Source: Gnetum montanum
Lineage: Eukaryota; Plantae; Gnetophyta
DNA: 64,000 nucleotides
Assembly: GCA_015680685.1 (NCBI GenBank)
Contig: MNCI01000673.1
Span: forward strand, 496,253-560,252
Reading direction: 5' to 3'
Made by a program: the position numbers and the translations under genes. Of the stretch, positions 6,193 to 63,182 are shown one piece after another. The stretch's first letter is position 1; every line of letters starts with the position of its first letter. The notes under the pieces are model-generated. The model was not told the DNA's origin, searched no databases, and was given only the letters and a program-made list of their open reading frames with translations.

Positions 6193-7579
6193 TGAAACAC
6201 CGTGAAAATTTCAAGGCCTCGGCAGTTCAGTAAAAAGCTGGTGATTCAGGAAAAGGGTCACAACAAGGCGCGACATAGCAAGTTCCTTTTCAGATTAAAA
6301 GCCTGTCCTGCCACACTACGTGGTACAGCACAAATGAATTCCAAAAGATAGAGCAAAATGACGAGTGCACAGCGACAAGTTTTTGACCTTTCAAATTTTC
6401 TATGTTCTGAGAACCTTACCTTTTGGCATCTTACGCTGCATTATGTAACACGATGTAATGCAACAGAATGTCAGAAAGAAATCCGCCACAACATCAAGGA
6501 TGGCAAAGTCCCCAAAAAATAAAAAAAACTTCAGCAACACTTCGATGTTTTTTGTAAGTGCATTGTTTTACGCTGAATTACGCTATGAAGCGTAATTTAG
6601 CATGGTGCAGCATAATCTAGTATGGTGTAGCGTAATACGGGCATAGACAGAAATGACATAATATAAGCATCAGCAATCCATGCGGTGCAATACACTCTCC
6701 ACTATATTGTAGTGTAATCAAGAAATCGTCTATCGCTGAAGCTCCAACAAGAGCAGTTTACACCCTGTTACGCTTTAGAGCGTAAGGCCGTGTGGCACCG
6801 TAGACCTCAACAACCACCACATCAAGTCAACGGTAGTTTGCAAATTTAGGACATGCATCATCTAAACCATGTCTTTCTCTTGACTTTAACCTTATAAATG
6901 CTCCAGCTGATAAGGATCAAAGAGGGCAAAAAATTTCTCCTAAGATTGAATGAATTTTCTCTGTGATCGATTTTTTCCCTTTCATTGATAATCATTGATA
7001 GCCTTTGACAAGAGAAAAAAAAGGATCAGTAATCGCAAGAAGATCGAAGGTGATTGGCAAGAATCTCTAGTCAGGAATAGCAGGTTGATAGACATTCTGC
7101 TTCAGACCAGCTCCCTTGTACACTGCTAGAACGACGTAGATTGACCTTTGCTAGCTTCATCTTTGAACAATTTTCTAGTTATTGGCACATGCTTCGCCCA
7201 GATCAAAGTATGCTTGTAATAGTTATATTCAATATACTTTGTTTGGTGAATCCCAAATCTCAAGATTTTCCACGTCCTAAATCTGATCTCTTGTGCCTCA
7301 TCTACACGAATCTTGCAAATCTTCATAAATCTATTTCATCACTTTCAATTACCCACTAAGTTAACAATATCATATCTTCCTGTAAAGATCCATCATTTTA
7401 TTATCCAAATATCATAAAATTCTTTTTGTTACTGACCAAGTAAGTCCCTGTCTAATCGACAAGACTATACGCAGGATTCGTTTTCTCTCTAGCACGGCCC
7501 TCGCACAGATCTAGGATTAAAACTATGTACGCAGACTTTCGTTCAGTATTTCCACCGATTGACTTTTTCCATCGTTACA
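6193..7579 (+). repeat. 5' LTR of element B
   Basis: Colinear with 22530-23921, roughly 90% identical by eye and mostly transitions; TATA-like TATAAAT at ~6893. Confidence 0.95.
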
Positions 7580-10800: not shown

Positions 10801-11546
10801 TATTAGTGGATGAAGAAGCAATCCATTCTATCATGCTTCCCCCCACCACTAAAAAAATTGATCCTACCCCATTGACCTTTCACAATGAATCCATTAAGGA
10901 CAATTCTAAAGGTTAGGTGACAACGGTGCCTATGTTCATCACCATCCAAGTTGGCCAACACTGAATACAGAGGGTACATCTAGATGATGGGGTGGCCACT
11001 AATGTCATCCCTTACCCCATAGTGGATAAATTAGGCCTAATCGATTCGATCAGTCCTACAATGACATCATGCCTAAAGTCATTCAACGGAGCACGAGTGC
11101 AGGTCAAAGGGACAGTCCACATCAATTTTGTGGTAGGGGACCAATTCCCCACAGATGCTACATTTATCATCATTGAGGAGATGCCTAGATTCAATTTGAT
11201 CCTTGGGAGGTATTGGTTAGCCCAACTGACGGCAGTTTCATCACCCATCCATGAGGAAGTCCATTTGCCTTACGCAGGAGGAGCAGTGGTTATCCGCAGT
11301 GATGAAATAACCCCCCAGGCTATTAATAACATAGAAACAAAACAAGGGTTAGAAATCGAAACGCCTGAGAATCAATCCCCTATCCAAGTACCTGAGCAAG
11401 CTGAAATAGTGGCTGATGATAGCCTAACTTGGGCTAAGCTACCGTTCCAAGGACAAGATGGTGACATGAAGAAAAAGGACCATAAATCTCCCCGTCCTTA
11501 TGCACCATTAAAGATCAAAGAAATTAAGAAACGGTTGCAAAGTTAG
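7890..11546 (+). pseudogene. gag: gag-protease polyprotein of element B (disrupted), ending in its own stop codon
   Basis: KYNGEGDPNTHL...SLMGKALDWY retrotrans-gag core, YHQLCGHDTDYC knuckle, protease RVHLDDGVATNVIP...FNLILGRYWL; TAG at 11544-11546, at the homologous position in C, E and F. Confidence 0.92.
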
Positions 11547-11719
11547 CTGGTAAACAATGTTGTCCAACTATTATAGTTCCATCATCTATTCTATTCATGT
11601 TTACTAGTTATAATTTATGCATGTATTTACACTTTCCACTAGCTAGTCTCATTATGCCTATGTTTATCTTCATGTTTATGTTTATGTTTCCACTAGTTAT
11701 CTTCCTTACTCCTCTAACT

Positions 11720-12145
11720 CAAAAGGCTTGAAATGGCCTTAAACTAGCAATTTCATTTACGCTTTGTATCTGAATCTCATTTATGCTTGGAACCCAAATT
11801 TCATTTACGCTTTATACCTGGATTTAATTCACGCTTTGTACCTTAAACTATCTAGGGCCTAAAATGGCATAAAACTAATTACAACCTGCCATAGCTTAAA
11901 AATGGCAACTTGATGTTTATTTCATTCCTTCACTCATATAGCAAGGGCCCGAAATGGCCTTAAACTATCCATGGCCCGAAATGGCCTTCAACTATCTATG
12001 GCTCACAATAGCTTTAAACTATATCTACTTCAATCACACCTTACACCTGCACTACTCAAAAGCCTGAAAGGCTGTAAACTAACAATTTCATTTATGCTTT
12101 ACATTTGAACAATTTAGTAGCCCGCAATGGCTTCAAACTAGTAAC
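11720..12145 (+). repeat. Array of AAATGGCCTTAAACTA motif copies downstream of gag-PR
   Basis: About 8 degenerate copies, e.g. at 11731, 11862, 11952, 11978, 12126; equivalent arrays follow gag in C, E and F. Confidence 0.8.
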
Positions 12146-12352
12146 TGCATTAACACCACTCTCAAAACTAATTATGATTTACCATAACGTCAAAACCTAC
12201 GATCCTACTTGCGCTTTACATAAAAAGAAAAAAAAACAAAGAAGTCCATCAAAATTAACACCAAAATTTGTATCAAATATGTTAAGAGAAAAGAAAAACA
12301 TTGTCTTTTGTTTTGTTACACCAAAATAAAACCCGAGGCTAATTTAGCCACA

Positions 12353-15300
12353 TTATGCATCTCCCTTGTTACCACTATCTCCTGTATCCCCCAGTTCAAC
12401 TTCTACTTCAAGCAGGTCATCCTCATAGGGGCCATCCCTTGCATGAGGAACCCCTTCGTGAGGTAGACCCTCTTTGTGAGGCTCTTCAGTGGGGGATTGC
12501 TCACCATGGCAACGACTAGCTTCATTATGCTCTATTTCCTGTAAACCCTCTTCATGAAGACCACCAACTTCGTTAGCTTCACCCTGTTGAGGATTCTTCT
12601 CAGGTCACTCCTGTGATCAGACATGATACATATATTAACATCATCTTCAAAACTAGGAATAACAAAAATGCAATAATACTGCAAGTTACCTGTGATGGTC
12701 CTGCATTAGTAGCAAAGGGGACTTGTTCTAAGACAATCCATAGATGTTGCATGATTTCATCCTTGGTGAGCTTAGATCAAACCTCGTCCCCTAGATTACT
12801 TCGAGCCTTGACCTTCCCCTTTTCCATGAAAGTCCATCATGGTGGTTCGGGGAAGAAAGAAGGAATGGTAGTCACACCTCCAGGAAGAGTCACTTCCCTT
12901 TCCGGAGAGGCACTCACCATCACTTGTTCCTAGAATTTCTCAAATGCTCTCGAAGCATCAATAACATCAAGGAATAGCTGAAGGGACTCAGCCTCAACAA
13001 CAGAATCCCTATAATATTAATGATAGGTAGTGCTTTCTTGTTTGTAGACCTATTTATGATCTTTTTGTGTCTGCCCCCACTCTTGGATACTCACACTAAA
13101 GTCCTTCCAGTCCTGGTTCTTTTGAGCTAGGAGATCCATTTGCATATGTTGCTCAACTAGTTCATGACTAGTTTGGACACTGTTCCTGATGACACTCCAA
13201 TAATGGGCATATTCAACAATAGTTATCCTCCAGTCCTCACTTCCTATTCCCTAGGCTTGCAAGAATTCATTCCTTGATCTTAAATCCCCAACCTCATCAC
13301 ATAGGGCCACCCTCTCCTTCTCCGACCTTTGCAACCTCTTCCAAAGATCCTCATTTATGCTTTGACATTCCCATAAGGAGTGAGTAGTCAACAATAGTTA
13401 TCCTCCAGTCCTCACTTCCTATTCCCTAGGCTTGCAAGAATTCATTCCTTGATCTTAAATCCCCAACCTCATCACATAGGGCCACCCTCTCCTTCTCCGA
13501 CCTTTGCAACCTCTTCCAAAGGTCCTCATTTATGCTTTGACATTCCCATAAGGAGTGAGTCGAGCATACAACACACTTATGCATCTCATCATAAATGTTG
13601 TGTGGCATGACGATCGCTTCTGATGGGGGTTCAGTGGCATCTAAATCAATAGGCTCTGACAGATCCCATTTGAGGTGAGCTCCTAATAGCATAAAATGAT
13701 AGTTCGGCATAATTAGGTAGTGTAACTCCATAATGACTGTAACGTACTAGCTTCAGGATAAATTCACTCTAAGTGACTGATCATGTCTTGGACGACACCT
13801 TCCATGAAGGTGACTTTATCAGGAAATTCTCCCTAGGATTGAGTCGCCACTATTGCCAAGCGTACGCTCTAGTCACCTATTATGCAGAATACATTCCATA
13901 TAAGGACATGACTGAGACATTACGATGACCAGTACAACCTTTAGAATTTTTCTAAAGTCTACTATGCTATAAGAATTAATTTTATCGAGTAACAAACCAC
14001 TTGCCTTGTCTAGTCCCAGCTGAAAGAACTTTGGCATCCTCAACTACTACTTCCTCTTCCTACGCAGGAGCTTGTTCACTCCTTGCCTTATTGACTGGGG
14101 CCTCTTCTTTCAAAATTGAGGCCCCTTCTCTACACCGTAAGACTATAGTCCCTATTTCAGGGGTCAACCGTTCCACAACCCTTTCCTTCGCTATCATGCA
14201 AAATAGCTAGTTAACATAAGATTTCACTTTTGTTCAACGAATATTATGCTATGCAATGGTGTTTCTACATAAATCATGACCATTGGTATATTTCACCACT
14301 TACTGCCTGAAGGATTACTCTAAAACCTGAATTGCATTTTCTTCCCCACGAAACCCACTGGCTCGGCAGATTCCTTGGTCAAGCGAGACTTTTTCCGTGG
14401 CACTAATGAATCCATTATCTCGACAGCCAGATGCTTCCCCCTCAATACATCGCCAGTGTAAGAGGGGGGTGCCCCACCCACGCTATCTTGGCAGTGTGTT
14501 CGAGGTGCCACCATACTTCTAGTTGTTACCGACAACGACTCCCCGATCCCTTCAGGAGGGTCTTGCAACCAGATAGTGCCGAAGACATGGGAAATCCATG
14601 GTTTGGAAATCTGATTACGGTCCTATTGCACCCAGATCCCATTCCTCTGGACTACCAAAAATTTGGCAAAATGCCAAAAACAAGCTATGAAGAAGGTGAA
14701 ATGCACATTGAAGTGGGACTCAAGCTTCTTCCGAAGCTTGATCATCTCAACGTGCAAGGCTTTGACAAAATAGCTTGCAGAATTGAATCGTGTCCCCTCC
14801 TCTAGGACCTCTCACATAATTCGGGCCTGCTCGATAGTGAGAAATCTCCCTTGTGAGAGTGTCTTGGGAAAGGCCTAGGCCCAGAAAAGGGGGTAAATAC
14901 TATGGGCTACCTCCAACTCGATCCTTTCAGCAAGGATTCCCTTGACTTTCTTCTTAACGCCTAGCCACTCCTCTATCTCTTGCTGGTACTTGGTACTCCT
15001 CTTCGATTTTTCATCTATAGGAAAATCGTTAGAGGGAACGCCAAAGAGATTAGCAAATAGTTGAGTGTCAATGTCAAAATTTACGTGCACATTATGCACG
15101 TGTATGCAGATATGCTTAGCTTCTTTGCTGAAGGAGTTGACTAAGGTCAACATTTCACCTGCAGTAGCATCAGGGGTTATGGCCAAGAAAAGGTCCATTA
15201 ATCTAGCCTCCCGAAGGTTATTGGTTATCACAATTGGGGCCACTCTATGGCTGAGCCAACGTTTGGGGCCTCCTTTATATCACCATAACGGAAGAGGAGA

Positions 15301-16868
15301 CTGTTAGCCTCGTGATGGGAGGCCATGATAGTAATCTCCCGTGATTCCCTAACTACTAACACGAAACAATAGGTAAGTCGACACCAACTGATAACATTGA
15401 CATAATTCATCATCATGATAAAGCTTACCAGGCCTGAAAGGTAAAGGAAACAGAGGAATTTTCCTTGACACATCTGCAACGGTAAGGGGAGGGTCCAAAG
15501 TCCACTCCCTATCTAGCCATCCGAGTTTCTTGCATCTAGAAAAGAAGTTGGCATAATGGGTAGGGTATTCTGGGATCTTGAACACCAGTTTTTCTATGAT
15601 GGTAGCTCGTACATTGCTGATAGAGGTAAACTCCCATATAGCCCTTTCGTTCAATGATAATGTATCATTATTTCCCAAAAGGTCATTTTCATTGATGAAA
15701 AATCTACACCATAGACAATCTCTTTACACTCAATACACATCTAAACAATAGTTAGCACATTACAATACTATGAAGCGAAATGGAACTTACCCACCTGTGT
15801 AATGCACGGTACCAGGTGTATTTTGGAAGTAGGTTGTGAGATGACGAGCCATGAACAAAGTGTTATAGAAGTCATAGCAGTTAAACCTGGGCATCTCCCA
15901 GATCTAGCCCAAATGCCTTAAACACCTAGCACTCTATTCGCAGTCTTGCACCTGCATTGTTTCGATTGCACCATCTGACAAAAATGCCAAGATGCTCTGT
16001 GTTGAACCAACCAATAGCATCTCTAAAATGGTAGTAGCTTCATCACCTGGTAGATGCGACTAGATGATTACACTATAATTACGGAGCAAAAATTGCAAAA
16101 AATTCTACACGCCCCTTCAGAACCAAACTCCCTCCTCCTTTATACGAGCATGAGGAGGAGGAACATTGGCCATGAGAACATGAATGCAGCATAGAACACC
16201 CACAATGTCCAAAACGATTAGGATGGGATTTAGCATAATACTGTACGATAAAAAAAATGTATTACTATCAGACAAACTATTTGGACAGAAAGATTCATCA
16301 CACTACACTAGGGTTCGCACGATTCTCAGAAAATTACAGAGTACACTGGAGACGCATGACCAAAATTGTCCAAACCCTTGCAACAACTCAAGGTTTGTCC
16401 TTGACAACGACGATGAAAGCAACACTGCGTATTACCCCAGCATACTAGATAACTATTACAAATGATAAAAAAGAAAGAAAATAGGACTCCAATTACGCCA
16501 TGCATGGATACAATACTTAGATTTTTTTTAGCTATACATCTACACAGCATTACTCCATACTCCCTAAACTTTCATAATAATACAAAGTCTATCAAACCGT
16601 AATAGCCCAGCTTACGTAAATAAACATTAACGTTTGACGCAACATGCGTATCCAAAATAGAAAAAATGCAACATGCGTATTCAAAATAAAAACAACTACA
16701 ACGCTGTAACAAACGTGACAATAGTGCAAAGGGGTAGACAACAACTTACTGGTTAAGCAGAGTAACTTCCCGAGCCTCTACTCTTGCCTATGAAGCCTAC
16801 TGTAGACTCTCTTGCACTTCATCAATCCTAGCCAACTTGGTGTTCTTTCCTTTGACCTTTGGTGCCAT
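12353..16868 (-). pseudogene. Antisense multi-exon accessory gene of B: basic N-terminus, FCP1/SCP-like (NIF/HAD) domain, PMD-like domain, coiled coil, acidic tail
   Basis: Exons with GT-AG borders: 16868-16750 (MAPKVKGKNTK), 16240-15791 (LIVLDIVGVL...FLQFLLRNYSVIIWSH...YNTLFMARH...FQNTPGT), 15703-15429, 15355-~14304, ~14207-14004, ~13875-13749, ~13684-12690, ~12610-12353. Frame is preserved across the first three junctions; homologous in C, E and F. Confidence 0.85.
13213..13560. repeat. 175-bp near-perfect tandem duplication in the antisense gene
   Basis: TCAACAATAGTTATCCTCC... starts at both 13213 and 13388; one mismatch seen. Confidence 0.92.
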
Positions 16869-17463
16869 GGATGCAATCAAACAAAATCTTCATAAAGTTG
16901 TCTACTCACACTTTACTTACGCTCCCTTATTGCTATAGCCAGATCCAAATTCGCAATATTGGTAACCTATTTTGAGTATGAACCATTAGTTTATAAATAA
17001 AACGCTTGAAACTAACTGATTCTTTCTGCTTGATCGACATAGAACTTTCCCGAAACACTGGTGTCAGTATGATATGGAACACGAAGGTCAGGGCATTAAT
17101 TTAGTAGATATCACACGAGTTATGGTCTGAAATGACCTTAAACTAATACATAGCTTATCACCTCATAATCTAGTTGCATTAACTACTGTCTATACAAAAT
17201 TTTAAATCCAATTATTTCGACACACTAGACATGCCATGTTACATCTTGCAACCTATTTCATATGCTAGCATCTAGGAAGCCTAGCTTGTCATTTCTTTTT
17301 ACAAACTATGCGTAGTTGTAACAGTCCACTAATACCTTAAACTGGAAACTCCTTTGACATGTAATTCTGACATAGAAACAAACAAACATTTATCATTCAA
17401 TAGATTGGCAGAAAGACAATGTAACAACTTCCATTTTTGGCAATTTTGCAAGGCCATTCGTAA

Positions 17464-20400
17464 ATGGATGCAGCTTTAACTACACCCTTAGCCTTGATAG
17501 GGCCACAAGGGAAGATCATTAGGCAGTTCAATCACACGCTAGTAGGAATGAACCTTTCCCTTTACGATGCAACCATAGCAACATTGGAAACATCCCCAGA
17601 CTAGCCAGAACATCTAGCCCAAACACTCAACCTGGAGGCTAGTGATGTAACCGAGGATTCTCTCAGTGAGGTCCCTGTGATTACGCAGAAGGGTGAAAAT
17701 AAAACTCTTAGGGTTAGTTCTCTCCTAGACCAATAGATGAAAAGTGATATAACACAAGTTCTCCAAAACAATGCTGTTGTATTCGCATAGTCATATGAAG
17801 ACATGCCAGGTTTAAACCCAAGATTAATAGAGCACAACATAATCTTAGACCCATGCATCAAACCAATTAGATAGAAGGCACAAAAGATTAAGCCAGAAAT
17901 TATGCTACTAGTGCGTAATGAAATCACCAAGTTGTATTAGGCTGGTTTCATTCACATGGTCGATTACTCAGACTGGGTATCCAACATCGTAGTTATTTCT
18001 AAGAAAATGGGAGGTATACGCATTTGCATAGACTTCTGGGATCTGAACAAAGCTACGGTTAAGGACAATTTTCTGTTACCTAGTATCGACCAATTGATCG
18101 ACACAACAGCTAGTCACGCGCTCCTATCCTTTATGGATAGCTTTTTAGGCTATAATCAAATTCTTATTAATTTAGAACATCAATTGACTACAACATTCAT
18201 GACACCCTAGGGAACCTTCTGTTACACCATGATGCCTTTTGGGTTAAAAAACGTCGAAGCAATGTACCAATGAGCCATGACATACATTTTTAGTGATTAT
18301 CTCTTAGGGAGATTGAATGACTACATAGATGACATACTTGTCAAATCTATAAAGTCAGAAGATCATTTAGAAGACCTAGAGTTAGTCCTTAAACGATGTC
18401 TCAAACATGACTTACGGCTCAACCCAAAGAAATCTGTATTCGGAGTCAAAACTAGATGCATGTTGGGGTTTGTTGTATTAGAGATTGGCATCCGAGTTGA
18501 CTTGAAAAGGTCAAAGCCATCATTGATTTAACGCCACCTACAAACCTCAAGAAACTACGTGGGTTACAAGGCAGGCTTCAATTTATCAAATAGTTCATTT
18601 CAAAGTTAATAGATAAATTACACCCCATGAAACATATTTTGAAGAAGGGTGTTAATTTTGAATGGACATATGACTACCAGTGTGCATTCGAAAATTTAAA
18701 AGAAGAGCTACAACATTTGCCAATAGTTTTCCCACCACAAAGGGATCAGCCTTTTTACATCTATCTAGAAAACTCGGATGTGTCTATAGCTGCGCTACTT
18801 TGCCAAAAGAGAAACGATGGGTCAGAAGCTCCTATCTATTACCTTAGTCACACTCTATTTGCGTACGAGAAAAGGTACAATGAAGTGGAGTGTAACTATT
18901 TGGCATTGGTTTTTGCACTAAAAAAATGTAGGCATTATCTCTTCCGTAGTCAAGTCAATATCATTTGCAAAAATAATGTTCTGCGAGCTATCTCAAACAA
19001 ATTGTTTGAGAGTAGTAGAATAGCTCACTAGAAGGCTATCACAGCAAAATTCGATTTACATTATGTTGGCTAGTCATCCACCAAAGGCTAGGCCATAGCT
19101 GACCAATTAGCAACATTGCCGATTAACGATCAAGCTACAATAGAGGCAGAATTCCCGAATGAACATGTACACAGTTTAAGCCCTATGTCAATAGGCCTTG
19201 AAGCAACGTTATACTTTGACGGGGCCTCAACCACTAGAGGTAGTAGTGCCACCACTGTTATTACACTTTCTCCTGAGGATGTGCATCCATCAGCTTACCA
19301 CCTAACATTCTCTTGTACTAACAATGTGGTAGAGTATGAGGGGCTCCTTATAGGATTGTTGAAAACTAGAGCACTTAAAGTTTAACACTTGGTAATCTGA
19401 GGTGATTTGATGCTTGTCATCAATCAAATCATAGGAGTCTATGCCTACAAGGCCATGCACCTACAGTCCTACTGCGATATGGCTAAAGATCTCCTGAAAC
19501 AATTTGTGACAACCGATGCCCAACACGTGCCACGTAATGAAAACGTTGTGGCCGATGCACTGGCCACATTGGCTCTAAACATGCCACCACACTTGTTTGC
19601 CACTTGGCCCACTTTAATGATAGAATGTGCAGATCCTGTCATTCAAGCAGTACAAATCTATTCATTAAAAGTGGGAGGAACGCCAGGATGGTACGATGAC
19701 ATTAAGAATTACCTTCTACATGGCGAACCACCACACAAGCTAACACATGCGCAAAAAGATGCAGTGCGCAAGCATGCCAGGAAATATGTCATCCTTGGAG
19801 ACAGTACTCTCTGTAGACGCTCTTTCAATGGGGTATTACTTACCTGCGTTAACAGTGACCAAGCACAACGAATAGTGTCCACAAGGGGCTGTGCAGAGGA
19901 CACGTAGCCCCACGAGAAATGGCTGCTAAAATCAGACGCCTAGAATATTATTGGCTATACATGGAAAAAGACTGCCTTGTCAAGGTTAAGACATGTGACA
20001 CCTGCCAATGTTATGCAAATCTAATACACGTGTCACCAATTGAGTTGCACACTACACAGATTACTTGGCCATTCCAACAATGGGGACTAGATATCATAGG
20101 TCCCATCGCACCCAAATCTTCCGTAGGGCATAGCTTCATTATCACCACCACTGAGTATTTCACGAAGTGGGTTGAGGCCATTCCCCTATGGAAGATCACA
20201 TCTCAGTAGGTTTGCCATTTCATCTTAGACAATATAGTAACTAGATTTGGACTTCCTATGACTATTGTGACTGATAATGGGCCATAATTTAGTAGTAAAG
20301 AAACCAAATCCTTTTATGATAATCTTGGCATCAAGCAGTCTTTTTCTTCACCATATTATCCCCTCAAGCAAATGGTCAAGCAGAAGCAACAAACAAGGTA

Positions 20401-22529: not shown

Positions 22530-23921
22530 TGAAAAACCATGAAAATTTCGAGGCCTCGATGGTTCAACAAAAAGCTGGTGATTTAGGCAAAGGGTCGCAA
22601 CAAGACATGGCACAGCAAGTTCCTTTTTAGATTAAAAGCCTGTCCTACCACACTACGTGACACAGCATAAATGAATTCCAGAAGACAGAGAAAAATGACG
22701 GGTGCACAGAGGCAAGTTTTTGACCTTTCAAATTCTCTATGTTCCGAGAACCTTAGCTTTTGGCATCTTACGCTACATTACGTAACATGGTGTAATGCAG
22801 CATAATTTTAGAAAGAAATCTACCACAACATCAATGACAGAAAATGCCCAAAAAAAAACTTTAGCAACACCTCAATTTTTTTTGCAAGTGCATTGTTTTA
22901 CGCTGAATTACACTATGAACCGTAATTTAGCATGGTGCAGCGTAATCTAGTATGGTGTAGTGTAATACAGGCATAGACAGAAATGACATAATATAAGCAT
23001 CACTGGTTCATGTGGTGCAATATGCTCTCCAGTGTATTGTAAAGTAATCAAGAAATTATCTGTCGTCGAAGCTCCAACAAGAGCAGTTTACGCCACATTA
23101 CGCTTTAGAGCGTAAGGTGGTGTGGCACCATAGACCTCAACAACCACCACATCAAGTCAATAGCATTTTGCAAATTCAAGACACACATCATCTAAACCAC
23201 GTCTTTCTATTGAATTTAACCTTATAAATGCTCTAGCTGATAAGGATCAAAGAGGGCAAAAAATTTCTCCTAAGATTAAACGAATTTTCTCTGTGATCGA
23301 TTTTTTCCCTTCTATTGATAATCGTTGACAGCCTTTGATAAGAGAACAAAGAGGATCAATAATCACAGGAAGATTGAAGGCGATTGGCAAGAATCTTCAG
23401 TTAGAAATAGCAGGTTGATAGACATTCTGCTCCAAACCGGCTCCCTTGTACACCGCTAGAACGAGGTAGATCGACCTTTGCTGGCTTCATGTTTGAACAG
23501 TTTTCTAGTTATTGGCATATTCTTTGCCCAGATCGAAGTCTTCTTGTAATAGTTATATTCAATATACTTTGTTCATGAGGTGAATCCCAGATCTCAAGAT
23601 TGCTCACGTCCTAAATCTGATCTCTTGTGCCTCATCTACACGAATCTTGCAAATCATCGTAAATCTATTTCATCGCTTTCAATTACCCGCTAAGTTAACA
23701 ATATCATATCTTCCTGTAAAGATCCATCATTTTATTATCCAAATATCACAAAATTATTTTTTTCTACTAACCAAGTAATTCCCTGTCTGATAGACAAGAC
23801 TGTCTAGGGCACCTCAAATTCATTTTCTCTCTAGCATGGCCTTCACACGAATCTGGGGTTAAAACTGTGTATGTGGACTTTCATTCGGTATTTCCAGTGA
23901 CCGACGTTTTCTGTCGTTACA
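22530..23921 (+). repeat. 3' LTR of element B
   Basis: Copy of 6193-7579; ends GTCGTTACA followed by TSD TTAGT. Confidence 0.95.
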
Positions 23922-32300: not shown

Positions 32301-34496
32301 AATTTGAGCCATTGCCAGGATTTGATCATTGATGATGAAACCCTGATCAGTGACCTTGTACCTACAAGAAGTTGTAAAATCAATGAAGCTGGATAAGGTA
32401 ATCAAGAAAAAATTATAAAAACATTATAATAATCATGTTTACCCCTGTAGATGGTACATGGTGCTAGGTGGATTTTCGAATGATGTGTAGACTCTATGTG
32501 TCACCATTAGAGTATTGTTAGTATTATACTAACTATACTTTGGCATCGTCTAGATCTATGAAAGGTAATGTGAACTTATGGCATATCAATGGTCCCCTTG
32601 TAGTCTTCAAAACTAGCCTATGAGTAATATACTTGGTAATCAGGCTAGATGGCTAAGGCAACAGGGTCTCCACAATGACCACGACTATATCTAAGGATAA
32701 CTATAACCACAGCATTACACTAAAGTTCCTAAGAAGGTAGGTAAGCAAGTCCCTTGTCCCAAGTTGAAACCATAATGAGAGCTTTCCAAGAGGCATGGAA
32801 ATGGTGGAGTATTGGTCTTGGGATTACCAATGTAGCACAAAATACCAACTAGATCTACTATGATGAGAGTAGGAGTCAAGAAGACCACACATGAAACAAA
32901 ATAAAAACATTGTGACCAATTAGAATTTCTGAACAATTTAGATAAAACATCTAGTTAGAAGTGAAATTAGCCTTTGTAAAAAGCTCTAAGGTGTTTAATT
33001 GAATAGGCTTAAGGAATTCCACAAAAAGACATTATTACAACCTTTCAAAGCAAAAATGTTATAACCTATTAGAGTTAACAAATTTAGACAAAACATCTAG
33101 TCAGAGGTGAAATTATCCTCTATAAAAAGCTCTAAGGTGTTATCTGAATAGGCTTAAGGACTTCCACAAAAAGGCATTATTACAACCTTTCAAAGAAAAA
33201 ACATTATGACCTATTAGAGTTAACAAATTTAGACAAAACATCTAGTTGGAGGTGAAATTAGCCTCTATAAAAAGCTCTTAGATGTTCATCTAAATTAGCT
33301 TACAAAATTGCATAAAAGCATTGTTACCATATTTCATAGCCTTTATAGCTTAAACTATATCTTAGTCTAAATTATGCATAAATTTAGAAAAAGCATCTAA
33401 CTTATGCATAAATTTGAAAAAAAAAACATGTAAACTATGCACAAATTTAGAAAAAGCAAGATAAACTTAGAAAAATCCATGTAACCATAGTAAAATATTA
33501 TTTAAAATAATAAAAGCTTTTACTCTTATAGAAAAAGCATATCAACCACTTCTATTTTGGGTAATGTACTACAACCATGACTTTTGCCTTGATTCACACA
33601 GCCATAGCAAAAAATTTATAAAAAATTTGTTTTAAGTCTAATCGGAGTGACTTCACCCTATTGGGAAGCTAAAGCCAAAGACTATGTAGCTATGACTAGA
33701 AAATGGAAAAAACCATTTCCATTTTCATATGAAAATTTTACAAATCTACATGAAATTACAAAAGAGGCACAAATAACCTAACTACACAATGTTAGGGAAA
33801 TAGCCATAACTTCTTCATGTCAAAGTGAAATTAAATGAGAAAAGAACTATCAAAAAGCATTAAGAAAGGGCTACAAATGCATAACCTTTAATGTTACAAC
33901 TATTTAGCCATTTCACTGAGCAAAAATACACAACTTTACCTACTTTTTCATAGCAAACTTCAGAAATCTCAAAGCCTAAATTTCACATAGCCATTAAAAT
34001 GGTTGAAATAACCAAAACCATTGAAACCCATTTAAATTCACATCAAAATAATGCAGTAGGATTTTGTAAAAATTTAATTTTAACCAATACTGAGACACAG
34101 ATCTAAAAGAAATTTCCATACCCTAAGATTTTGAGAAAAAAGCATAAAATAGCAAGTCCTATTTCCAAAATCAAATATACAAAAGCTAAAGAAATTAAAA
34201 AAACATAGATCTAAATGGGAAAAGAAAAAAATACAAGATTGGATTTTATCAAAATTTCATTTTAATCACTCTAATAATGTAGATCTAAAAATATGGCTTG
34301 AACATTTGAAAAGAAAAAACCTAGAGAAATCACAAAAACCAAAGGCAAAAATAGGTAAAATTGCCTACCTTGGAGAAGTGACAAATAGGGCCTAGATAGA
34401 GATAGGCCTAGGAACCTTTAACAACTCCATAGAATGATCATACATCCTCTAGATTCTAGGATTTTTACCTTTTTCTCCTTTCTATTTGGATGCCAT
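29362..34496 (-). pseudogene. Antisense multi-exon accessory gene of C (homolog of 12353-16868)
   Basis: Exon 1 34496-34369 (MASK*KGEKGK, GTAGGC donor); NIF-like exon ~32890-32443 (LIIVDLVGIL...YNTNNTLMVTH...FENPPST); PMD-like ORF 31595-31852 (FYDLFGI...EVLEWL); coiled-coil exon ~30350-29530. Confidence 0.78.
32932..33330. repeat. ~145-bp tandem repeat (about 3 copies) in intron 1 of the C antisense gene
   Basis: AACAAATTTAGACAAAACATCTAG... at 32932, 33077 and 33222. Confidence 0.85.
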
Positions 34497-42904: not shown

Positions 42905-45900
42905 CTATGGGTTATCCATTTCCTTGTTAGGTCCTACATCCTCATTTGGATCCTATATAAATCAAACATAAAATAATAAACTAATGGATGAGGAAGGTAA
43001 TGCATAAGGTTATCATGAAATAAATTGCAATAAAATAGACTTGGCTAACCTAAGATGGGCCTACATCCATGTTTGGTGGTATTTTTTCAAGGCCAAACAC
43101 CAAGAACCAGAGGATTTCCTCCTTAGACAAATTTTCCTAGTCTTCCTCCCCTAAATGGACCCCTACTAATATTTTTTCTTTCTCCATGGTCATCCATTAG
43201 AGTGGCCCTAGAGAAAATGTAGCAGATGTGGCCTCTTCAGAAGGCATGGTAATTTCCATTTTGGGAGATTCATTGACTAGTAAGTGTTTTGCAAATTTAT
43301 CATAGGCCTAGGTAGCACCAATCACATCAAGGAATAACTCACAACCTTGCCATTCTATAGATGCATCTCTATACTTTTGGTAGTAAGCAGCACATTCCAT
43401 TTTATACATATGTTTATGATTCTTTTGTGCTTACCCCCATTCATATACCTTGGCACTATAATCTTTTCAATCCTGATTCTTCTGGGCCAAGAGATCCATT
43501 TGTAGACATTATTCAATTACTTCATGTGTGGTCTTATTTTTGCCCCTTATGGTCAACCAATATCTAGTGTAATCAATTATGACCATACACCAACTACCAT
43601 CTAAATTTTCATGGACCATTAGGAATTCATTCCATGACCATAGGTCTTGTAGGTCAGCTGCCTGACTTACCTTTTCTTTTTTGAGTTTCTAAACTCATTT
43701 CCAAAGATCTTCATTGACGGTCCTACACTCGCATAGTGATTGTGCTGAGTGTAGCACACATTTTCTTATCTCATCATATACATGATGAGGCACCTCTGCT
43801 ACCTCTAGAGAGAGTTCAGGCATGGCTTCCACTTCAACTAGCTATTTATGGTCCCATTTAAGTCATGAAGCTATTATACCAAAAATAAGGAAATGTTGGT
43901 CATAAGATAGTAGAAAAAGAAAATGCATTAGCCTAGATGCACCAATATTAGGATCGATTTGCTTTAAGAAATCAATCATATCATCCACTACATCTTTCAT
44001 AAAAGAAAATTTATCTAGGGTTTACACCCATGGCCATAGGTAGAAAGTGGATGAAGAATCAGGGCCCTTAGCAAAAGTAGTACCCACTATGTGATAAAGC
44101 ATGTTAGCATTATCAAGAAAAAATGAAAAAGCAAAAGAAAACAAAAAAAACAAAAAAATAGAAGAGGAAGAGAGAAAAGAGGGAAAGTGATAATATAAAT
44201 TACAATGCAAAGCTCTTACCCAACAAACCCTCAAGGGTGAGAGTAGAGGGATCACCCATCTACACACTATCAAATAAACCAACAAAATCACCATCCTTGA
44301 AATGTAGCCCTTATTCCTCAAGATGACTTAAGAGTGTGGTGGCATCCTCAACTATCATATGTCCCTCAGGCTATGGGACACTATTTGCAAAAGGCTCCTC
44401 TATGGTAGGGGCCTCCTCTTCTGTAGCAAGGGCCTCCTCTTCTATGGCAGGTGCCTTCTCTTCTATAGCAGGGGCCTTTTCTCTAGCAATAGAGATATCT
44501 TCCTTGTCTACCATGCAAAAGCTAAGGTTAGGATGCCAATCCAACATATATGCATGAAAAATAAATAAATAAAAAGTAATAAATAAGCTAGCTAAAGCAT
44601 ACTCACCAACAAGCTTAGACCACACATAGTGGGCTTTGATGCATAGACTTTTGCCTCTTCCTTTGATCACATGTGAGGTTTCCTATACATGACAAGGATT
44701 TTTAATCTATAAATTTGATTTTACTATCTCCATAATGCAATGTGATCCCCTCACCACATTACCCATGTTGGTGAGGGGAGCCTCTCCAAGGTTTTCATGC
44801 TCATGGAAGGACAATCCTACCAGATCATTGGTGGTCATGGAAAAAGACTTCCCAATAGCCTCTGGAGGGTCTTGAGACCGGGTGGTGTGGAATATGTGGT
44901 GGATCCATGGTTTGGATACTTGGATATGGTCTTGCATCACCCAAATACTTGGAAAATCATGAGCTTAGAAGATGGGATAAATATGTTGGACTACCTCCAA
45001 TTTGACCTTTTTCATATAAATTCCCTTATGATCCTTGTTAGTGCCTAGCCATTCCTTGATGTTTTCTTGATGGTTCAGATCCTTGCTAGTATTTTCACCC
45101 ATGGGTAAAACATTAGAGGGGACACCAAAGAGATCTAAAAAAAGATCATCAGTGATCTCAAAGACCACTTGCACGTTGTGAACTTGTGTGCGAAAGTGGT
45201 CAACACTTTTTGTGAAGGAATCAACAATGGTAATCATTTCCATTACTGGCATACTTAGGTTCATAGCCAAAAGGAGATCCATAAGCCCAACCTCTTGAAC
45301 ATTTTGGACAATTGTTACAAGGGCCCCATTGTATAACCAACGTTGTGACTCATTGACCTTAGCATATTTAAAGAGAAGGTTAGCCTCATTATGCCCTAAG
45401 ATAATTACTGTAACCTCCTTGGATTTGGTTACTACTATAGTAACAAAAAAGAGAAATAATATAGAATTAGCCATGTAAAAAGAAAAAAACATCAAATCAA
45501 GAATGCATGAAAATGAACACATAATATAACTTGCCTAATACAAATGGCATAGGGAATGATGGTACTTGTAGTAGTACTTCTTCTATAGTGAGTATCCGAT
45601 GGATGTCCATTCATCATCTAACCATCCAAGCTCTTCACACTTCACATAGAATTTAGAGTACTTGGTCAGATAAGTTCTAAAATCTATTGCAAGTTTCTCT
45701 ATAACACCAACATGCATGTTCTCAATGGAGAATAACTCTTGTAGGGCCATTTGAGCTAGGGCTAATGCCCCCTCTCTATCATGAATATTGTCTTTATCAA
45801 TCAAAAATTGGACAACCGATAAAACATAATAAATACTTCAAACCATACAAGATGAACAAAAAAAATGTCTAATCATCTTAATAGAACTCGCCTGCCAACA

Positions 45901-46342
45901 TAGTAGATGGTTCTAGGTGGGTTTTGGAAGATTGTTCCCATATGATGAGCAACAAACAAGGTATTATATTTGTGATAGCATTTGAACTTTGGCATTGCCA
46001 AAATCCAAGACAAGAGTCTTAAGCCTTTTAGTCATTGACTTGAGCCCCCTACCCCTTCCACCTTAGTAGATATATTTATCATGAATTTTAGGATGCCTCG
46101 GTTCACTCCAGGAACTAATGTTTTAATTAGGGTGCCTACTATTTTAGTAGATAAATGTGACCATATCATTATGCTAAAGTGACGAAGTAGGAATTCTAAG
46201 AATTCCTAGGCATCCTTCCAGAACCAAATTTTTTAAATTTCCCACTCGAGCATGGGGTGTAGGGACATTGGGCACAAGGGCCCTTATATAGCACAAAATC
46301 CCTACTAGCTCAACTACGATCAGGATTGGCTTCAACATAACC
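42905..46342 (-). pseudogene. Antisense multi-exon accessory gene of E (exon 1 displaced beyond F)
   Basis: NIF-like exon 46342-45892 (ILIVVELVGIL...FLEFLLRHFSIMIWSH...YNTLFVAHH..IFQNPPRT); ORFs 45583-45804 (LGWLDDEW), 44965-45522 (GLMDLLLA...FLDLFGVPS), 44707-44940 (SKPWI..QDPPE); EEKAPAI repeats. Confidence 0.85.
44390..44495. repeat. 21-bp coding tandem repeat (about 5 copies) encoding EEEAPTI/EEKAPAI on the minus strand
   Basis: GGCCTCCTCTTCTRTRGCARG repeated; ORF 44371-44670. Confidence 0.8.
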
Positions 46343-46660
46343 CTGTATTTCATAATGAAAATGTTAGTGCATAGTAAGGTAACATTTTTTTTAAAAAATA
46401 TGTTTGAAAATGTTTTTCTAGGTGTTGGTTACGCTCTTATAGAACGTAACAATTTCCTATGTAAAATTACTCTAAGTGTCAGCTACACTTTTGTAAAGTG
46501 TAGCAATCTTCTATGAAACTTTTTTCTTGAATATAGAGCATGAAAACCATATGACAAGTAATTAAACCAAAATTCTTTCTAAGTGTTCATCTTGCCCCTA
46601 TGATGTCCTGCATAGTGTAGCAACTATAGCATCCCGCGTAGCATAGCAATTAAACCTGTG

Positions 46661-48091
46661 TGAAACACCACTAATTTTGGACCAGCACTTTTAAATGAAA
46701 ATGACTCAAGCCCTTTCGAAGTTCCAGGAGGAAAAAATTTGACTAAGGTAGTTTGCTCACCCTTAGCATGAGCAACTCCTAACAATGTCAAAATCAGGTC
46801 AATAGTCCAACATCAAAATTCTAGCATCAGCGTCAAAAATTGCAAGTTTTTTAGGTCACATTGCAGGTCATGCTGTAGCATGACCACAACGTGACCTACC
46901 CAAAATAGCATCAAATTAGACACATTCAAGCTCAAATTTCTAGATCCATATCACACATAGGTAGGTAGTAGTTGTACTTAGAAATAGGCTTCAAAAATTC
47001 AAATTTTGGTGTCAAAATTGCATTTTACCTGACTCATGCTCAAGTCACGCTGAGGTCACGCCTAGCGTGACTACCCAACATGACTGTAGCATGAATACTG
47101 GTCACGCTTACATAAAAACACTTCAAACACATGCTGAAGAAACACTAAAGCCTAGAAAACTCATGCTGCGAGCCTTGGCAGAGATGCCTCAAACAGTCTC
47201 AAATTGACATCTTGACATCCTAAAGCAATTGATCCATGGTCAAGCAAGCCGGGGTTAAATTTCTCTTATTTTTCATTTCATTGTAACTCTTCATTTATGG
47301 GCTTGTCAGGCCCTTATGGTCTAAATTGTATGTAATCCCATGGGCTTGAGTAACCAACGATTTGTAAAATGCAATGTACCTAGTCAAGAACGTGACTTGC
47401 CGACACACATCCAAGTCATGCACAACTATCCACCAGACACATGTCACTTGATCCATTTTTCTCTCATCCCTTAGCCATCGATTAGACTCTTGGATTCCAA
47501 ACCCAAGTCCGGACTAGCCCTATAAATACCCTATAAATTCACATAAACCAGGGTTTGTAATTAGAGACACTTGTAATTCGAACAACATACAGCAAAACTA
47601 GAAAATCCTTAGACACTCAGCACACTTGACTCTTGGTGTCAAAGAACTTCTCACATACATCATCACATCATCACATCACCACATCACATCACCTCGAGGC
47701 TAGGAATTTGACTTGTCATCCACACATGTGCAACTACACTTTGACTGGTGCACATCTTTTCTAAGCAATATAATACAGTTTGTTTTGCCAACCATTGTTT
47801 CTGTTTACTTTGTTTTATGTTTAGTTTATCTTTTGTTTACGTTCTACTTACATTCTTCTTATGTTCCTATTTACATTTTGTTTGCAATACACTGCATATA
47901 TTTATGTTTACATTTTATGCACACTATTCAAGTTTTAAGACATCAATTATGATAACCCCAATGCAATGTACTCTACCTTTGTTACCTTTTCCAGCTTGCC
48001 CTCAAGCGAAGGCAGGGTCAGCTATGCCTGCCCGATGATCTTTCAGTGTTTGTTTCCTTCTAGCCTTACACCGATGATTTAGGTTAGAATA
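46661..48091 (+). repeat. 5' LTR of element F
   Basis: Colinear with 63183-64000; TATAAATA at 47521; (CATCA)n at ~47658-47692; ends AGAATA before the PBS. Confidence 0.9.
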
Positions 48092-51500: not shown

Positions 51501-52254
51501 ATCAAAGACTACCTCCCTAGACTTTCGTGCTAAGGAAATTAAGCTAGATGACAAAATAGGAGACATTACTACAACCCCTATGTTCATAATGATATAGGTT
51601 AATCATTTTAAGATACATAGGGTGCATGTCAATGATAGTGTGGCAACGAATTCAATACCTTTTTCTATCATCAAAAAACTAGGACTTACTGAAAAAATAC
51701 AGCCCATGACAACCTCTTTCCTAAAATCCTTTAGTGGTTCCCATGTTGGAGTGAGAGGTATGGTTACCTTGGATTTCGTAGCTGGGGACCAATTCTCCAC
51801 ATCAGATAAATTCATAGTAGTCAATGAAATGCTAGGATTTAATATAATCCTAGGGCATCCCTGGTTGGCTCAACTTAAAGTCGTATCCTCATCAATCCAT
51901 CAAGAGATCGACCTACCTTACAAGGGTGGTGAGATCATCATATATGGGGATGCAATACTACCACCTACTTCCTCACACCCTAGAGTAGATCAAAAGTTAG
52001 AAATTGTGTTCGTTGAGCCTAAGCAAGGAACCATGAGCATACTTCAAAACATAAATCCAATGTTAACTCCCAATCATATTGAAATTGAAGAAACACTAGA
52101 CAAGACAAACATAGGTGCCATCCCTACTGATGTCTCTTGGTCGGAATTACCCTTTGATATCACCGATGAAGGGGAAGGTGAGTATAAGATCTTACCCACA
52201 TGCCCAACCCCACATGTTAAGCTACAAAGGATCAAGATGCAACTCAACAAATAG
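48522..52254 (+). pseudogene. gag: gag-protease remnant of element F
   Basis: KYNGEEDPNAHL, SLTRKALEWY, CEYHQWCGHGTDYY, RVHVNDSVATNSIP, FNIILGHPWL; stop at 52252-52254; 27-bp duplication TSHQNKDNV at ~51140-51200. Confidence 0.9.
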
Positions 52255-52269
52255 AACTAAGTAACAACT

Positions 52270-52530
52270 ATCTGAAATGACGTTAAACTACAACTGTTTG
52301 AAATGACATTAAACTACCAATCATCCGGTATGACATTAAACTACCAACAAATGTCCACAATGACATTAAACTAGCCACGATTAGAAATGGCTGGTTCTGT
52401 TTAAAATTTTTTGAAAATGTTACTACCTTTGGCCCACCTGGTAATTCTTTCTTTCTTTAACAACAAATGAAATAGTCCATCATGACTTTAAACTGATGTA
52501 CCCAGCCTAAAATGGCTTTAAACTAGACCC
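52270..52530 (+). repeat. ATGACRTTAAACTA motif array after gag of F
   Basis: Four copies in 52277-52375 plus two at ~52482 and 52512. Confidence 0.85.
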
Positions 52531-52903
52531 AACAAGTTACAGATTCATGAACTCCCATCATTTTACATCGAACTTTTGTTTACAAGTTACAAGTTATAAT
52601 TTAAATTCATGCACGGTCATTGCCTTATTTTTCAAATATTTACCTTACATTTTGCTTTACATTTTAGAAATTTATGCTACCTTTAGTTGCATGCACATGT
52701 TCACAAAAAGAAAATAAAAACAATGAAAAACATGGAAAATAACAAAAATATACATATATATACATGGGATAGCAAAGTAATGAAAGAATGAAACCATTTT
52801 ATACCACAATTAAATCTAGGTCATTACATCAATCTTTATACATTCTATCAAACATCCAAAAATCTAAAAACACTTAGTGGCCTAAGTATGACTAATGCAA
52901 AGC

Positions 52904-55900
52904 TCATGGATGGGGCTGGTCCCCAAGATCCTCTTCATCATCTGTTCCTACTCCACTAGGGCCAACTCCATCATTAACATGTCCCTAAAAATACAAAATA
53001 GAAGAAAAAAACAAAATAGGAAAGGGTAATAAACAAATCATAAATACAAAAATTAGAAAAATAGTAATACTAACAATGAAAACAATAAAATCATACAAAA
53101 AATAAATGCCACAATAAAACACTCACAAGTGAGGAAGGCCCCAAGTTGGTCTCTAGATGCCATAGAATCTCCTTCTTGGGCACATTTGTCCAATCCTCCT
53201 CCAAGCCAAGGTCAATGCCAACGAGTGCTTTGCCCTTGTCCACTGGGGTCCAAGTAGGGTGATCAAGAGAGAACATGCCTGTTGCAGTCTCCCTAAAGGC
53301 AATGGTAATCGTTCTCTCTAGAGATCCCTCCACCTCGCTACATTCGACAAACCTATCATAAGTAGGACACAAACCTAACCCATAGATGAACATCTCCACC
53401 CGGTGACGTTCAGCTGACTCTTCCTTTAACCATTTCTTATATTGATGTTTGTGGTCCTTCTGGTCTTGGCCCCACTTTTGTACTTTGGTAGCGAAGGATT
53501 TCCAATCTTGACATTTCTTATTCAATAAATCTATCTATGCTCTTTGTTCTACTAAGTCACATGTAGCCTGCACCTTACTATTTAAAATCGTCCAATAACA
53601 TGCATAGGTAATTTCGGATGAGCACCATGTGCTATCACTAGACAACCTAGCAGCAGAAAAGTCATAACGGGATTGGAGATCCCTTTTCTCCTCTCTCTCT
53701 CTTTTGCTAGTGTCTCCTTCAATGTGTGAACCTCATCCCATAGATGCTTAGTTGAACATCTTAAGGTCTAGATTGTCTTAGCATTCTGTATGATGCAACC
53801 AGAAACTGCATCATAAATCTTTATTGGGACTTGCTCAATGTCCCCTAGCAATTCAAGGTGAGCATTAATGTGGGTAGATTTAGAAGGATCCCACTGGATT
53901 TTGGTGCCTTCAAGTGCACACAAAAAGTAGTCGTGATGGAAAATAAACACAAAGAAACACAGTAAAACTAGACACTTAGCATGACATGTAATGTACACAC
54001 ACCTAGTTTTGGATGAGCTTCTTGTAAGTGGGTGACCACCTCATTAACAATGCCTGTAACAAAATCCATTTTGCTAGGTATCTCAAGCCATGGCCTCAAT
54101 GAATCAGTTGATGTGGGATGAGTAGGGGAGGTTTCTTCAATTAGAACCTATGATCCTGACACTGCTTCCCAAGACATAGGTGCCTTAGGAATTTTAGAGT
54201 TTATCCCAAAATGGTCAAAATAATCAAGAACAACACATAAAAATCAAAAGATGCAGAATATAGATTAAGCTAAAGAGGAACATACCAAAAAGACCTTTGC
54301 TATCCAGCCTAGGTGGATCACCAAGCTACAAAGAATCTATCAAAGAAACCATCAAGAACATCCCTTTGATCACTTGAATGCCTAAGTACATCTAAGACCT
54401 CCACAAGATTCATTCCCAAGTTTCTTGTCCCCTCCTCTTCTTGTGGGGCAAGAATTTCTCCTTTGATTTCTTTTTCTTTTTCTTTTCCTTCCTCCTCAAG
54501 TATCAAAGCCATGACCTCTCTCTCCTTCTCTGGACTTTCCTTTGAAATAGCACCAGAACCTTAAAGTTAGTTTGATATAGCTCATAGGTACATCCAATAG
54601 CATATAAAATAGAAATAAAAGGCAAATATATAATAATAAAACAAACCACTTACCCTCCACTAGCAGTATAAACAAAATATTCTTTGCCCTTGGGGGCCTC
54701 ACATCTAAAGTAGATTCCTTTACACATTCCTTCCTTTTCACCTTTGCCTTGGACTTTCCAATAGTCTTACTAATTAAGTGTTCAACCCTCTTGATAGATG
54801 TGCGTAGCCTAGGTGGTTCCAATCCCAAGTTATCATGGGAATGATGAGAACGGCTTGCCATACCTCCACTAGTAACCGATACAGACTCCTCAATGTCTTC
54901 CGACGGGTCCTGGGATCTAGTGGTGCTATATAAGTGGCATATCCAAGGGTGGGATAATTTCAAATGGTCTCTCAAAATGTAGTGGTTATCCTCATGAACT
55001 ACTAGGAATTCAGTGAACCTATGTAGGTATCCCGCAAAGAAGGCAAAGATGAAGTGGAATTTTGCATGGATGCTTGAATGTAACTTGATAATTTCCCCAC
55101 GAAGGCCAGATTCTAGAAATTGTACTTAATTGTATTGCATGCCTATCTCCAAAAGCACATGCATCACATGCGCAGACTTGATCCCAAGGTTTATCCCTTG
55201 AGAAAGAGATTTGGGGAATGCCCTTGCCCAAAAGAGAGGATATAAGAAGTTCACTTCCATCGATCGGGTATCCTCTCACATGGTAAATCCCTTGGGGCCC
55301 TTAGACAAACCTAGCCACTACTCAAGCTCCCTTATGACTTATTCATCCTTAGTTGCTTTGTCCATGGCTACCATGGCACCATTCATGGGAATGCCAAAAA
55401 GATCATAAAGAAACTCAATGATTAGGTGGAATGATACCTTTACTCCTCAAACCCATGTGGTAAAATGAGAAGCATCACCACTAAAAGAGTCAACAATCGT
55501 AACCATCTTAGCAGTCGGAACGCTAGGAGTCAAGGCTGTAAACAAGTCCATCAAACCGGCTTGGGTGAGATGACCAATAATCAAATCAGAAGCTCACTTC
55601 CGTAACCACTTTTTAATTGCTCTACCTCCCCATACTTTGTGAAAAGTGTAGCCTCAATATGCCCTATAGTAATAGTAACTTCTTTGGGGGGGATGACTAC
55701 TATAAAAGAAAAACATAGAGTGAAAAGTTAGAAAAGGGACATGACATACAATGATGCAAAAAAGGAAAAGAAAATAGAGTCTAAGGTGTAGGGTCACTTA
55801 CCATCTGTGACTAGTGAAGGCAAGGTGGGCGTAGGATCAATCCTTTGGGAAAGAATTGGCCTATTAAGAGACCAATCCTTATGTAATCAACCGTGAGCTG

Positions 55901-57540: not shown

Positions 57541-57907
57541 GCTGATGCTAATGCTAACGCCTTGGCTCACGCTGCACTTTGGGAAGGTCCTTATTCAAAA
57601 TTCCCTTTTCTATCCCTCCCTATTTATTTAATTTTTTAAATATAATTTTTAGCCTTTTATTTTAGTTCCTCTTCTTTACTTTGGTTACATGTTGTTGTTC
57701 AAACCATCGTTGCCTGGTGATGCCCTAGCTTTCCTTGTCATTCCAACCCCCAAAATGGGGTCCAAAATTTCTTATGAAAGAGAGGAAAGTGATGAAAAAT
57801 AAAAAATAAAAAAATAAACATATATAAACATTTGGAAAAGGCATAAATTCATAAAAATTTAAAAGTCAAAATTTAAAATTTAAAAATAGTGTAAGTCAAC
57901 ATTACTA

Positions 57908-63166: not shown

Positions 63167-63182
63167 AACAAAGAGGGACCAG
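63167..63182 (+). promoter_or_regulatory. Polypurine tract of F
   Basis: CAACAAAGAGGGACCAG directly before the LTR TG. Confidence 0.85.

Follow-up and report, generated by a model that had tools for sequence, protein, structure and literature searches.

A 64,000-nucleotide stretch of the Gnetum montanum genome (assembly GCA_015680685.1, contig MNCI01000673.1, positions 496,253 to 560,252 of the forward strand; hereafter, the window) holds old, diverged copies, named B, C, E and F, of four families of retrotransposons with long terminal repeats (LTRs) and a multi-exon gene in antisense orientation. The best overall explanation for exon 2 of this gene is very probably that it encodes a captured, catalytically dead NIF domain (FCP1-homology, HAD superfamily) that has been kept in the antisense accessory gene of these Tat-type elements. 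The domain had been noticed in an inspection of the letters alone (the sequence-only reading), where it was described as a retrotransposon-borne pseudophosphatase module resembling the phosphatases that act on the C-terminal domain (CTD) of RNA polymerase II (Pol II). The coordinates of the features are collected in Table 1.

The sequence-only reading had derived the copy B peptide by reading exon 2 through its stops, and the same peptide was obtained when the minus strand was translated from 16239 to 15790. The frame is interrupted by five in-frame stops (16119-16117, 16107-16105, 16062-16060, 15936-15934 and 15906-15904), and the exon ends at consensus splice sites (acceptor AG at 16242-16241; donor G/GTAAGT, with the GT at 15790-15789). 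The copy B reading, with X at each stop, was used as a tblastn query against the window and located the other three copies; all the motif strings that had been quoted for C, E and F are present in them. The match in copy F extends from 56606 to 56172. Amino acid identity between the exon 2 copies is 38-49% pairwise, over 106-139 codons, and the pairwise alignment scores were 217-322, compared with 14 or less for codon-shuffled controls, so that the likeness among the four copies is far beyond chance. The B and F exons are alike in length, codon phases and splice sites. All four window copies carry stops and/or frameshifts.

The relationship to NIF proteins was assessed with profiles of the two halves of the exon. 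A profile built from the stop-free N-half pieces of the four copies (A4) was compared, using HMMER, with 1.84 billion proteins and produced nine matches at E<1e-3. Seven of them are true NIF (PF03031) proteins, matched with E-values from 6e-6 to 8e-4, and the remaining two are low-complexity repeats that represent noise. The seven proteins match the Pfam NIF model themselves with E-values of 1e-12 to 1e-42, and they aligned with positions 3-61 of the A4 profile, starting from position 1 of the NIF model. No relative of the retrotransposon domain closer than ordinary NIF proteins (36-42 bits) was found in this search. The C-half profile (A2), which played no role in choosing the host NIF proteins, was collinear with the same proteins directly after the N-half match (P 8.7e-4), and the pairing placed NTL-(F/M)-x-(A/T) opposite tLL-i-D-D and NPP opposite NPP.

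Comparisons with the host proteins gave the same picture. The alignment of the N-half with the host alignment by hhalign had a probability of 98.6%. A local hidden Markov model (HMM) was made from nine host NIF domains, and the copies were read through with X at each stop or frameshift. The scores were 49.8 bits for F, 40.3 for B, 38.1 for E and 37.9 for C, and the best of 1000 shuffles reached 4.7 bits. In B, E and F, a single collinear alignment covers positions 5-154 of the 195 in the host profile, from motif I through motif IV. In the ESM Atlas, the top clusters for the N-half of copy F were all NIF (0.80-0.83), a result taken only as a lead. A word-indexed protein search with the C-half of copy F gave no candidates. 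The profile comparisons support the view that the protein predicted from exon 2 is a NIF/FCP1-homology domain core, which starts at motif I and ends shortly after motif IV. A single MAFFT alignment of all pieces (A3), in which the N and C halves were stacked on each other, was dropped. Exon 3 was considered as the end of the NIF domain and rejected; the likeness (an acidic stretch followed by L-L-G) was seen by eye and had no statistical signal.

The gap-free stretches around motifs I and IV were compared with the residues that are invariant in the host proteins, and the changes in both motifs were found exactly as the sequence-only reading had listed them. Motif I, D-x-N-G in the host proteins, reads D-I-V-G in B, D-L-V-G in C and E-L-V-G in E and F; the nucleophile Asp is therefore Glu in two families, and the Val at position +2 is common to all four. 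In place of the motif IV Asp-Asp of the host proteins, B has A-R, C has T-H, E has A-H and F has A-L. This alignment is anchored by NTL and NPP, and the acidic pair that binds Mg is absent from every copy. Motif II, W-S-S in the host proteins, reads W-S-H in both E and F; B has x-S-H, with a stop at the W position, and C has lost the motif. The Ser is retained in the three copies other than C. The motif III Lys is Arg in B and F and Lys in E, in a region where nearby gaps make the alignment less secure. In the tree, the retrotransposon copies group as a single clade (100/100 support) on a long branch separate from the host proteins. Since all four families share the changes and form one clade, the catalytic loss predates the divergence of the families, which agrees with the earlier proposal that it was ancestral rather than the product of decay. 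The altered motifs support the prediction of a catalytically dead domain.

Synonymous differences between families are saturated in exon 2 (pS 0.76-0.81; pN 0.32-0.44), and a numerical dN/dS was therefore unobtainable. The identities at codon positions 1, 2 and 3 were 0.51-0.58, 0.62-0.72 and 0.32-0.40, respectively, and the baseline obtained from codon-shuffled sequences by the same alignment procedure was 0.38, 0.50 and 0.29. Third codon positions are near random between families, while first and second positions are conserved. A global DNA comparison of intron and exon was uninformative. The protein and, in B and F, the 450-nt exon length and the intron phases were kept despite the random third positions, a pattern that indicates that exon 2 has been under long purifying selection after losing its catalytic residues.

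RNA data from the same species were mapped to positions 53000-58000; they comprised three RNA-seq runs of the oligo-dT type and a fourth RNA run of another kind. The reads are 80-95% alike to copy F, most of them being less than 90% identical, and hence they stem from sister copies. The oligo-dT runs contain 25 reads (4, 12 and 9 per run) in which 57394 is joined to 56609, and the ends of the skipped stretch are the GT..AG of a minus-strand intron. Exon 2 of F begins at 56610, precisely where the NIF match starts. The RNA covers the exons, and the depth is near zero at 56841-57341, in intron 1. Another joint, 56185/56075, holds 22 diverged exon letters from sister copies and is consistent with splicing from the donor of exon 2 (GT at 56160) to an acceptor at 56074. 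More minus-strand introns (CT..AC on the plus strand) were observed at 55802/55699 and 54003/53893. In sister copies, the antisense gene gives rise to a polyadenylated and spliced minus-strand transcript, and the exon 2 boundary that had been predicted for a spliced antisense gene is one of the boundaries used.

The antisense gene is large and has several exons, exon 2 being the second: blocks conserved in tblastx comparisons continue downstream of it, in copy B, to position 12651. The protein sequence of these blocks is conserved in the other three copies, and the scores reach 228 bits against E. Their stop-free pieces had no Pfam match, and a protein search with the downstream 134/139-aa block returned 94 candidates, none of them significant. 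No conservation of copy F exon 1 was detectable in B, C or E.

Several results weigh against a captured NIF domain. The host alignment was picked via the N-half profile, so the hhalign and local HMM scores are partly circular, and the evidence free of circularity consists only of the library-wide A4 E-values and the C-half A2 test. Pfam searches of ten stop-free pieces in the exon 2 frame matched only NIF, with an E-value of 0.2 and 11.8 bits (copy E, 46035-46205, model positions 45-77), compared with a gathering threshold of 21.8 bits; these scores are those of pieces, since every copy is broken. Apart from that one NIF match, Pfam searches of 20 stop-free pieces were blank or gave noise. Half-domain profiles had no matches at E<=10 among solved structures, the ESM Atlas search with the C-half gave HNH_2 noise under the recognition level, and the last ~40 positions of the host domain were undetectable in exon 3. 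UBLCP1, CTDNEP1 and SCP1 are connected to the retrotransposon domain only transitively, by way of the host subfamily. As for the RNA, the reads prove splicing for the family rather than for this copy, and open frames in the expressed copies do not follow from them. Chance or composition could be invoked to explain the resemblance, in which case the exon would encode an unrelated retrotransposon protein. The lack of a stop-free piece above the Pfam threshold, the blank searches of solved structures and the C-half noise would all fit such an explanation. It is, however, already contradicted by the results: seven of nine library-wide matches are NIF proteins aligned over the full profile at the correct end of the domain, the C-half match is independent and collinear, and the local HMM scores are 33-45 bits above the best of 1000 shuffles. 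We give it next to no chance of being correct.

If the exon does derive from a NIF domain, the cargo could be, or could have been, an active phosphatase, with the residue losses being post-insertion decay or with catalysis carried out by other residues. All four copies are visibly decayed, and some catalytic positions are intact, namely the nucleophile Asp in B and C, the motif II Ser in three copies and the motif III Lys in E. However, all four families have Val at motif I +2, the first motif IV Asp is Ala in three copies and Thr in the other, and the second is never acidic, in families that differ at 51-62% of residues and whose synonymous sites are saturated. Independent decay would not strike the same positions alike; therefore, the changes were already in the common ancestor and were conserved afterwards, and an active enzyme is highly improbable. 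Alternatively, the NIF-like exon may be a passive fragment of a host gene, transduced once, drifting and useless to the element. The capture of host fragments by LTR retrotransposons is known (PMC7264820), the catalytic residues are gone and the C-terminal end of the domain is undetectable, as would be expected of such a fragment. Drift is difficult to reconcile with third codon positions at the random baseline next to first and second positions well above it, or with the length, phases and splice sites conserved between B and F. The exon was kept in four families whose reverse transcriptase (RT) regions are only ~69% identical in DNA, sister copies are still transcribed and correctly spliced, and transduced fragments are usually found in one or few copies (PMC7264820, PMC11963269). 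A passive fragment is thus quite unlikely, and a dead domain that was captured and then retained is the explanation that we favor.

The nearest relatives of the retrotransposon domain are proteins of the D-x-N-G NIF subfamily from Sphagnum, Helianthus and protist-like metagenomes. A Sphagnum protein (KAH8970694.1, cluster of P0003) has two tandem NIF domains, and a Helianthus 'putative FCP1 domain, HAD superfamily protein' (KAM0004709.1, P0005) has two NIF domains and a C-terminal DUF724. The proteins of this branch share with the retrotransposon domain the order and spacing of motif I (a hydrophobic run, D, x, x, G, x, L) and the W-x-R-P..FL.F....F.V.VWSS and NTLL....K....NPP.T blocks. Two hallmarks of the branch, the Gly that follows the +2 residue and the 'NPP' that follows motif IV, are both found in the retrotransposon domain. 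In contrast, the Asp, Asn, Lys and Asp-Asp residues are invariant in the host proteins; in the retrotransposon domain they are replaced by D/E-x-V and by K or R, and the acidic pair is missing. A further difference is that the host proteins are not within retrotransposons. FCP1, SCP1, UBLCP1 and CTDNEP1 (1ta0, 3shq, 8ujl) belong to the same Pfam family as the retrotransposon domain by transitive homology, and the host subfamily profile matched the solved structures of UBLCP1 (8e-8), CTDNEP1 (6e-5) and SCP1 (4e-4). The retrotransposon domain lacks both the DxDx(T/V) motif and the acidic motif IV on which these enzymes rely. The description as CTD-phosphatase-like was therefore correct with regard to NIF homology, but the closest kin are in the D-x-N-G subfamily and not among the DxDxT CTD phosphatases proper. 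TIM50, the mitochondrial presequence receptor, has a NIF fold without the catalytic Asp residues and acts as a peptide-binding module. It is the working analogy for how the retrotransposon domain may act; it belongs to another subfamily and a different cellular context, and the analogy is not based on sequence.

The elements that carry the gene can be classified, by their domain content, as Tat-type Ty3/gypsy LTR retrotransposons because an added RNase H (RVT_3) is present after the RT and RNase H. The Pfam families matched in pol were RVT_1, RT_RNaseH(_2) and RVT_3, and the RT of copy F is at 58726-59295. The best protein match to the element RT was 57% identical, and a Ginkgo gene model was 56% identical. 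As the sequence-only reading had stated, the gene is carried by the retrotransposons: it lies inside the LTR pairs and antisense to gag-protease and RT, with the protease (PR)-like open reading frame (ORF) upstream and RT, RNase H and RVT_3 downstream. The copy F counterpart of the copy B PR-like ORF, at 51622-52254, was identified by direct reading only. The gap between the gag/PR-like side and RT (11547-17950 in B and 52255-58725 in F) is ~6 kb and holds the entire antisense gene; it resembles the Ogre split at a much larger scale. The 5' LTR of copy F starts ~320 nt upstream of copy E exon 2 (46342-46660). Exon 1 and pol of copy E were severed because element F inserted there in a nested manner.

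Table 1. Features of the retrotransposon copies and their antisense gene. Positions are those of the window.
Feature	Positions	Strand	Basis and remarks
Exon 2 of copy B (450 nt), core of the NIF-like domain	15791-16240	-	Reading and splice consensus; host NIF profile positions 6-153 of 195
Exon 2 of copy F (450 nt), NIF-like core with a single in-frame stop (56417-56415)	56161-56610	-	Sequence, splice sites and RNA joint; profile positions 6-151
Homologue of exon 2 in copy E, broken by a frameshift (between 46243 and 46229) and two stops (46208-46206, 46034-46032)	45894-46341	-	tblastn
Copy C exon 2 homologue, three frames with stops, part of the middle missing	32442-32885	-	tblastn; local HMM match in two stretches
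Copy F exon 1, coding part, ATG at 57540, Lys/Gly/Arg-rich start, stop at 57486-57484	57395-57540	-	In frame with exon 2 across the joint; RNA depth 57342-57675
Copy F intron 1, 784 nt, GT..AG	56611-57394	-	RNA joint; CT..AC ends on the plus strand
Copy F intron 2	56074-56160	-	Splice consensus; RNA joint 56185/56075
Downstream exons of the antisense gene in copy B	12651-15705	-	Blocks ~15705-15267, 15240-14400 and 13620-12651; tblastx, 30-48% identity
Copy B 5' LTR (part recovered as repeat)	6193-7427	+	Repeat search; partner 22530-23761, 87-95% identical
Copy F 5' LTR (part recovered as repeat)	46660-47372	+	Repeat search; partner 63182-63871, 82-86% identical
Copy B pol	17956-19907	+	Pfam: RT 17956-18531, RNase H 18627-19031, added RNase H RVT_3 19407-19907
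Copy B protease-like ORF, end of gag side	10992-11546	+	Retropepsin-type ILG..WL motif, read directly; no Pfam match, weak

Other observations were made in the antisense gene. The coiled-coil-like C-terminal coding part of copy B contains a 175-nt tandem duplication (13210-13559, 99% identical) that is much younger than the other damage in that copy. The last conserved block of copy F (53133-53534, minus strand) had a weak Pfam match, below the cut-off, to the C-terminal end of DUF7745 (E 0.013, 15 bits), and its homologues in B and E look coiled-coil-like. Reads from three runs (13, 11 and 5 reads) skip 42 nt (14 codons) at 54829-54870 with non-canonical GT..CT ends, which is most simply explained as an in-frame length difference between copies and not as an intron. 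The run labeled 'transcriptomic other' (X1) was strongly one-sided, with first mates on the plus strand over exon 1 (57342-57675) and on the minus strand over 54837-55504, and 23 of its molecules begin at 55399. A library of the tag type, or a start within the gene, may account for this pattern.

Antisense extra ORFs (eORF/aORF) of Tat/Retand elements have been described between pol and the 3' LTR, and they encode PMD, coiled-coil or Transposase_28 products (PMC4408406, PMC11963269, PMC7264820). The gene described here is likewise an antisense accessory gene kept across Tat-lineage families, and its C-terminal part is coiled-coil-like. It differs in its location between the PR-like ORF and RT, in its several introns and in the NIF-like domain near its start. 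No PMD (PF10536) or TRP28 (PF04195) was found at E<=10 in the 20 stop-free pieces, a result limited by the HMMER filters and the broken frames. A phosphatase-like domain is not mentioned in those three articles. In a full-text literature search, no LTR retrotransposon was found to have been described with a NIF/FCP1-like domain, in line with the sequence-only reading, which knew of no description of such cargo. Two scans of metagenome contigs found no related loci.

In Ogre elements, according to the account of them in PMC4408406, gag-PR is split from pol by a spliced intron. Ogre elements share with the elements described here the separation of the gag-PR side from RT by sense-strand non-coding sequence, as well as the dual RNase H, but here the separating stretch is ~6 kb and includes a whole antisense gene. 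Captured host fragments occur in LTR retrotransposons (PMC7264820), and transduced fragments are typically limited to one or few copies (PMC7264820, PMC11963269). In a host module, MAIN/MAIL1 proteins, which have a PMD, act in the silencing of transposable elements (TEs) together with PP7L, an inactive PPP-type phosphatase (PMC7156037). The parallel is conceptual only, that of a TE-related protein working alongside a phosphatase-like protein, because PP7L has a PPP fold and not a HAD/NIF fold, and Pfam scans do not support a PMD in the gene described here.

The retention of a dead domain is best explained by the following sequence of events. A NIF domain from the plant/protist D-x-N-G branch was apparently captured once, before the divergence of the four window families. 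By the time they diverged, the motif I +2 Asn had become Val and both Mg-binding Asp residues of motif IV had been replaced, with the nucleophile Asp changing to Glu in two families. The dead domain was nevertheless retained by purifying selection within an accessory protein of ~900 residues. The introns of this gene survive retrotransposition because the gene is antisense to the genomic RNA. The four window copies are dead relics, and the expressed copies are sister copies elsewhere in the genome. By analogy with TIM50 or other pseudophosphatases, the domain may have a binding role without catalysis, clamping a peptide or phosphopeptide and so linking the accessory protein to a nuclear host factor. 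The more specific idea that it targets the Pol II CTD or components of silencing is less likely than not, and a role as a phospho-CTD reader or decoy is speculative. A fuller scenario, in which this Tat clade encodes its own pseudophosphatase, a dead NIF domain heading a nuclear accessory protein that reads or decoys a phosphorylated host target (the Pol II CTD or a silencing component) and so promotes transcription of the element or blunts its silencing, must be regarded as doubtful.

For some two decades, the extra ORFs of Tat/Retand/Ogre-type elements have posed an unsolved puzzle, and their known products are mostly domains of unknown function (PMD, TRP28) without a biochemical handle. Here, the domain that opens the accessory gene appears to belong to a well-understood enzyme family, and in it the catalytic residues were lost but the scaffold was conserved through very deep divergence. 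Because the conserved scaffold belongs to a well-understood family, concrete and falsifiable tests of its activity, binding groove and partners can be proposed. The domain would be a new type of captured host domain for LTR retrotransposons, and the location of a multi-intron antisense gene between protease and RT has no report in the literature searched. Since the elements are abundant in this genome, their products could matter for host transcription or silencing. If the reader or decoy role were true, the pseudophosphatase would be a TE-side counterpart of the phosphatase-like silencing modules of the host.

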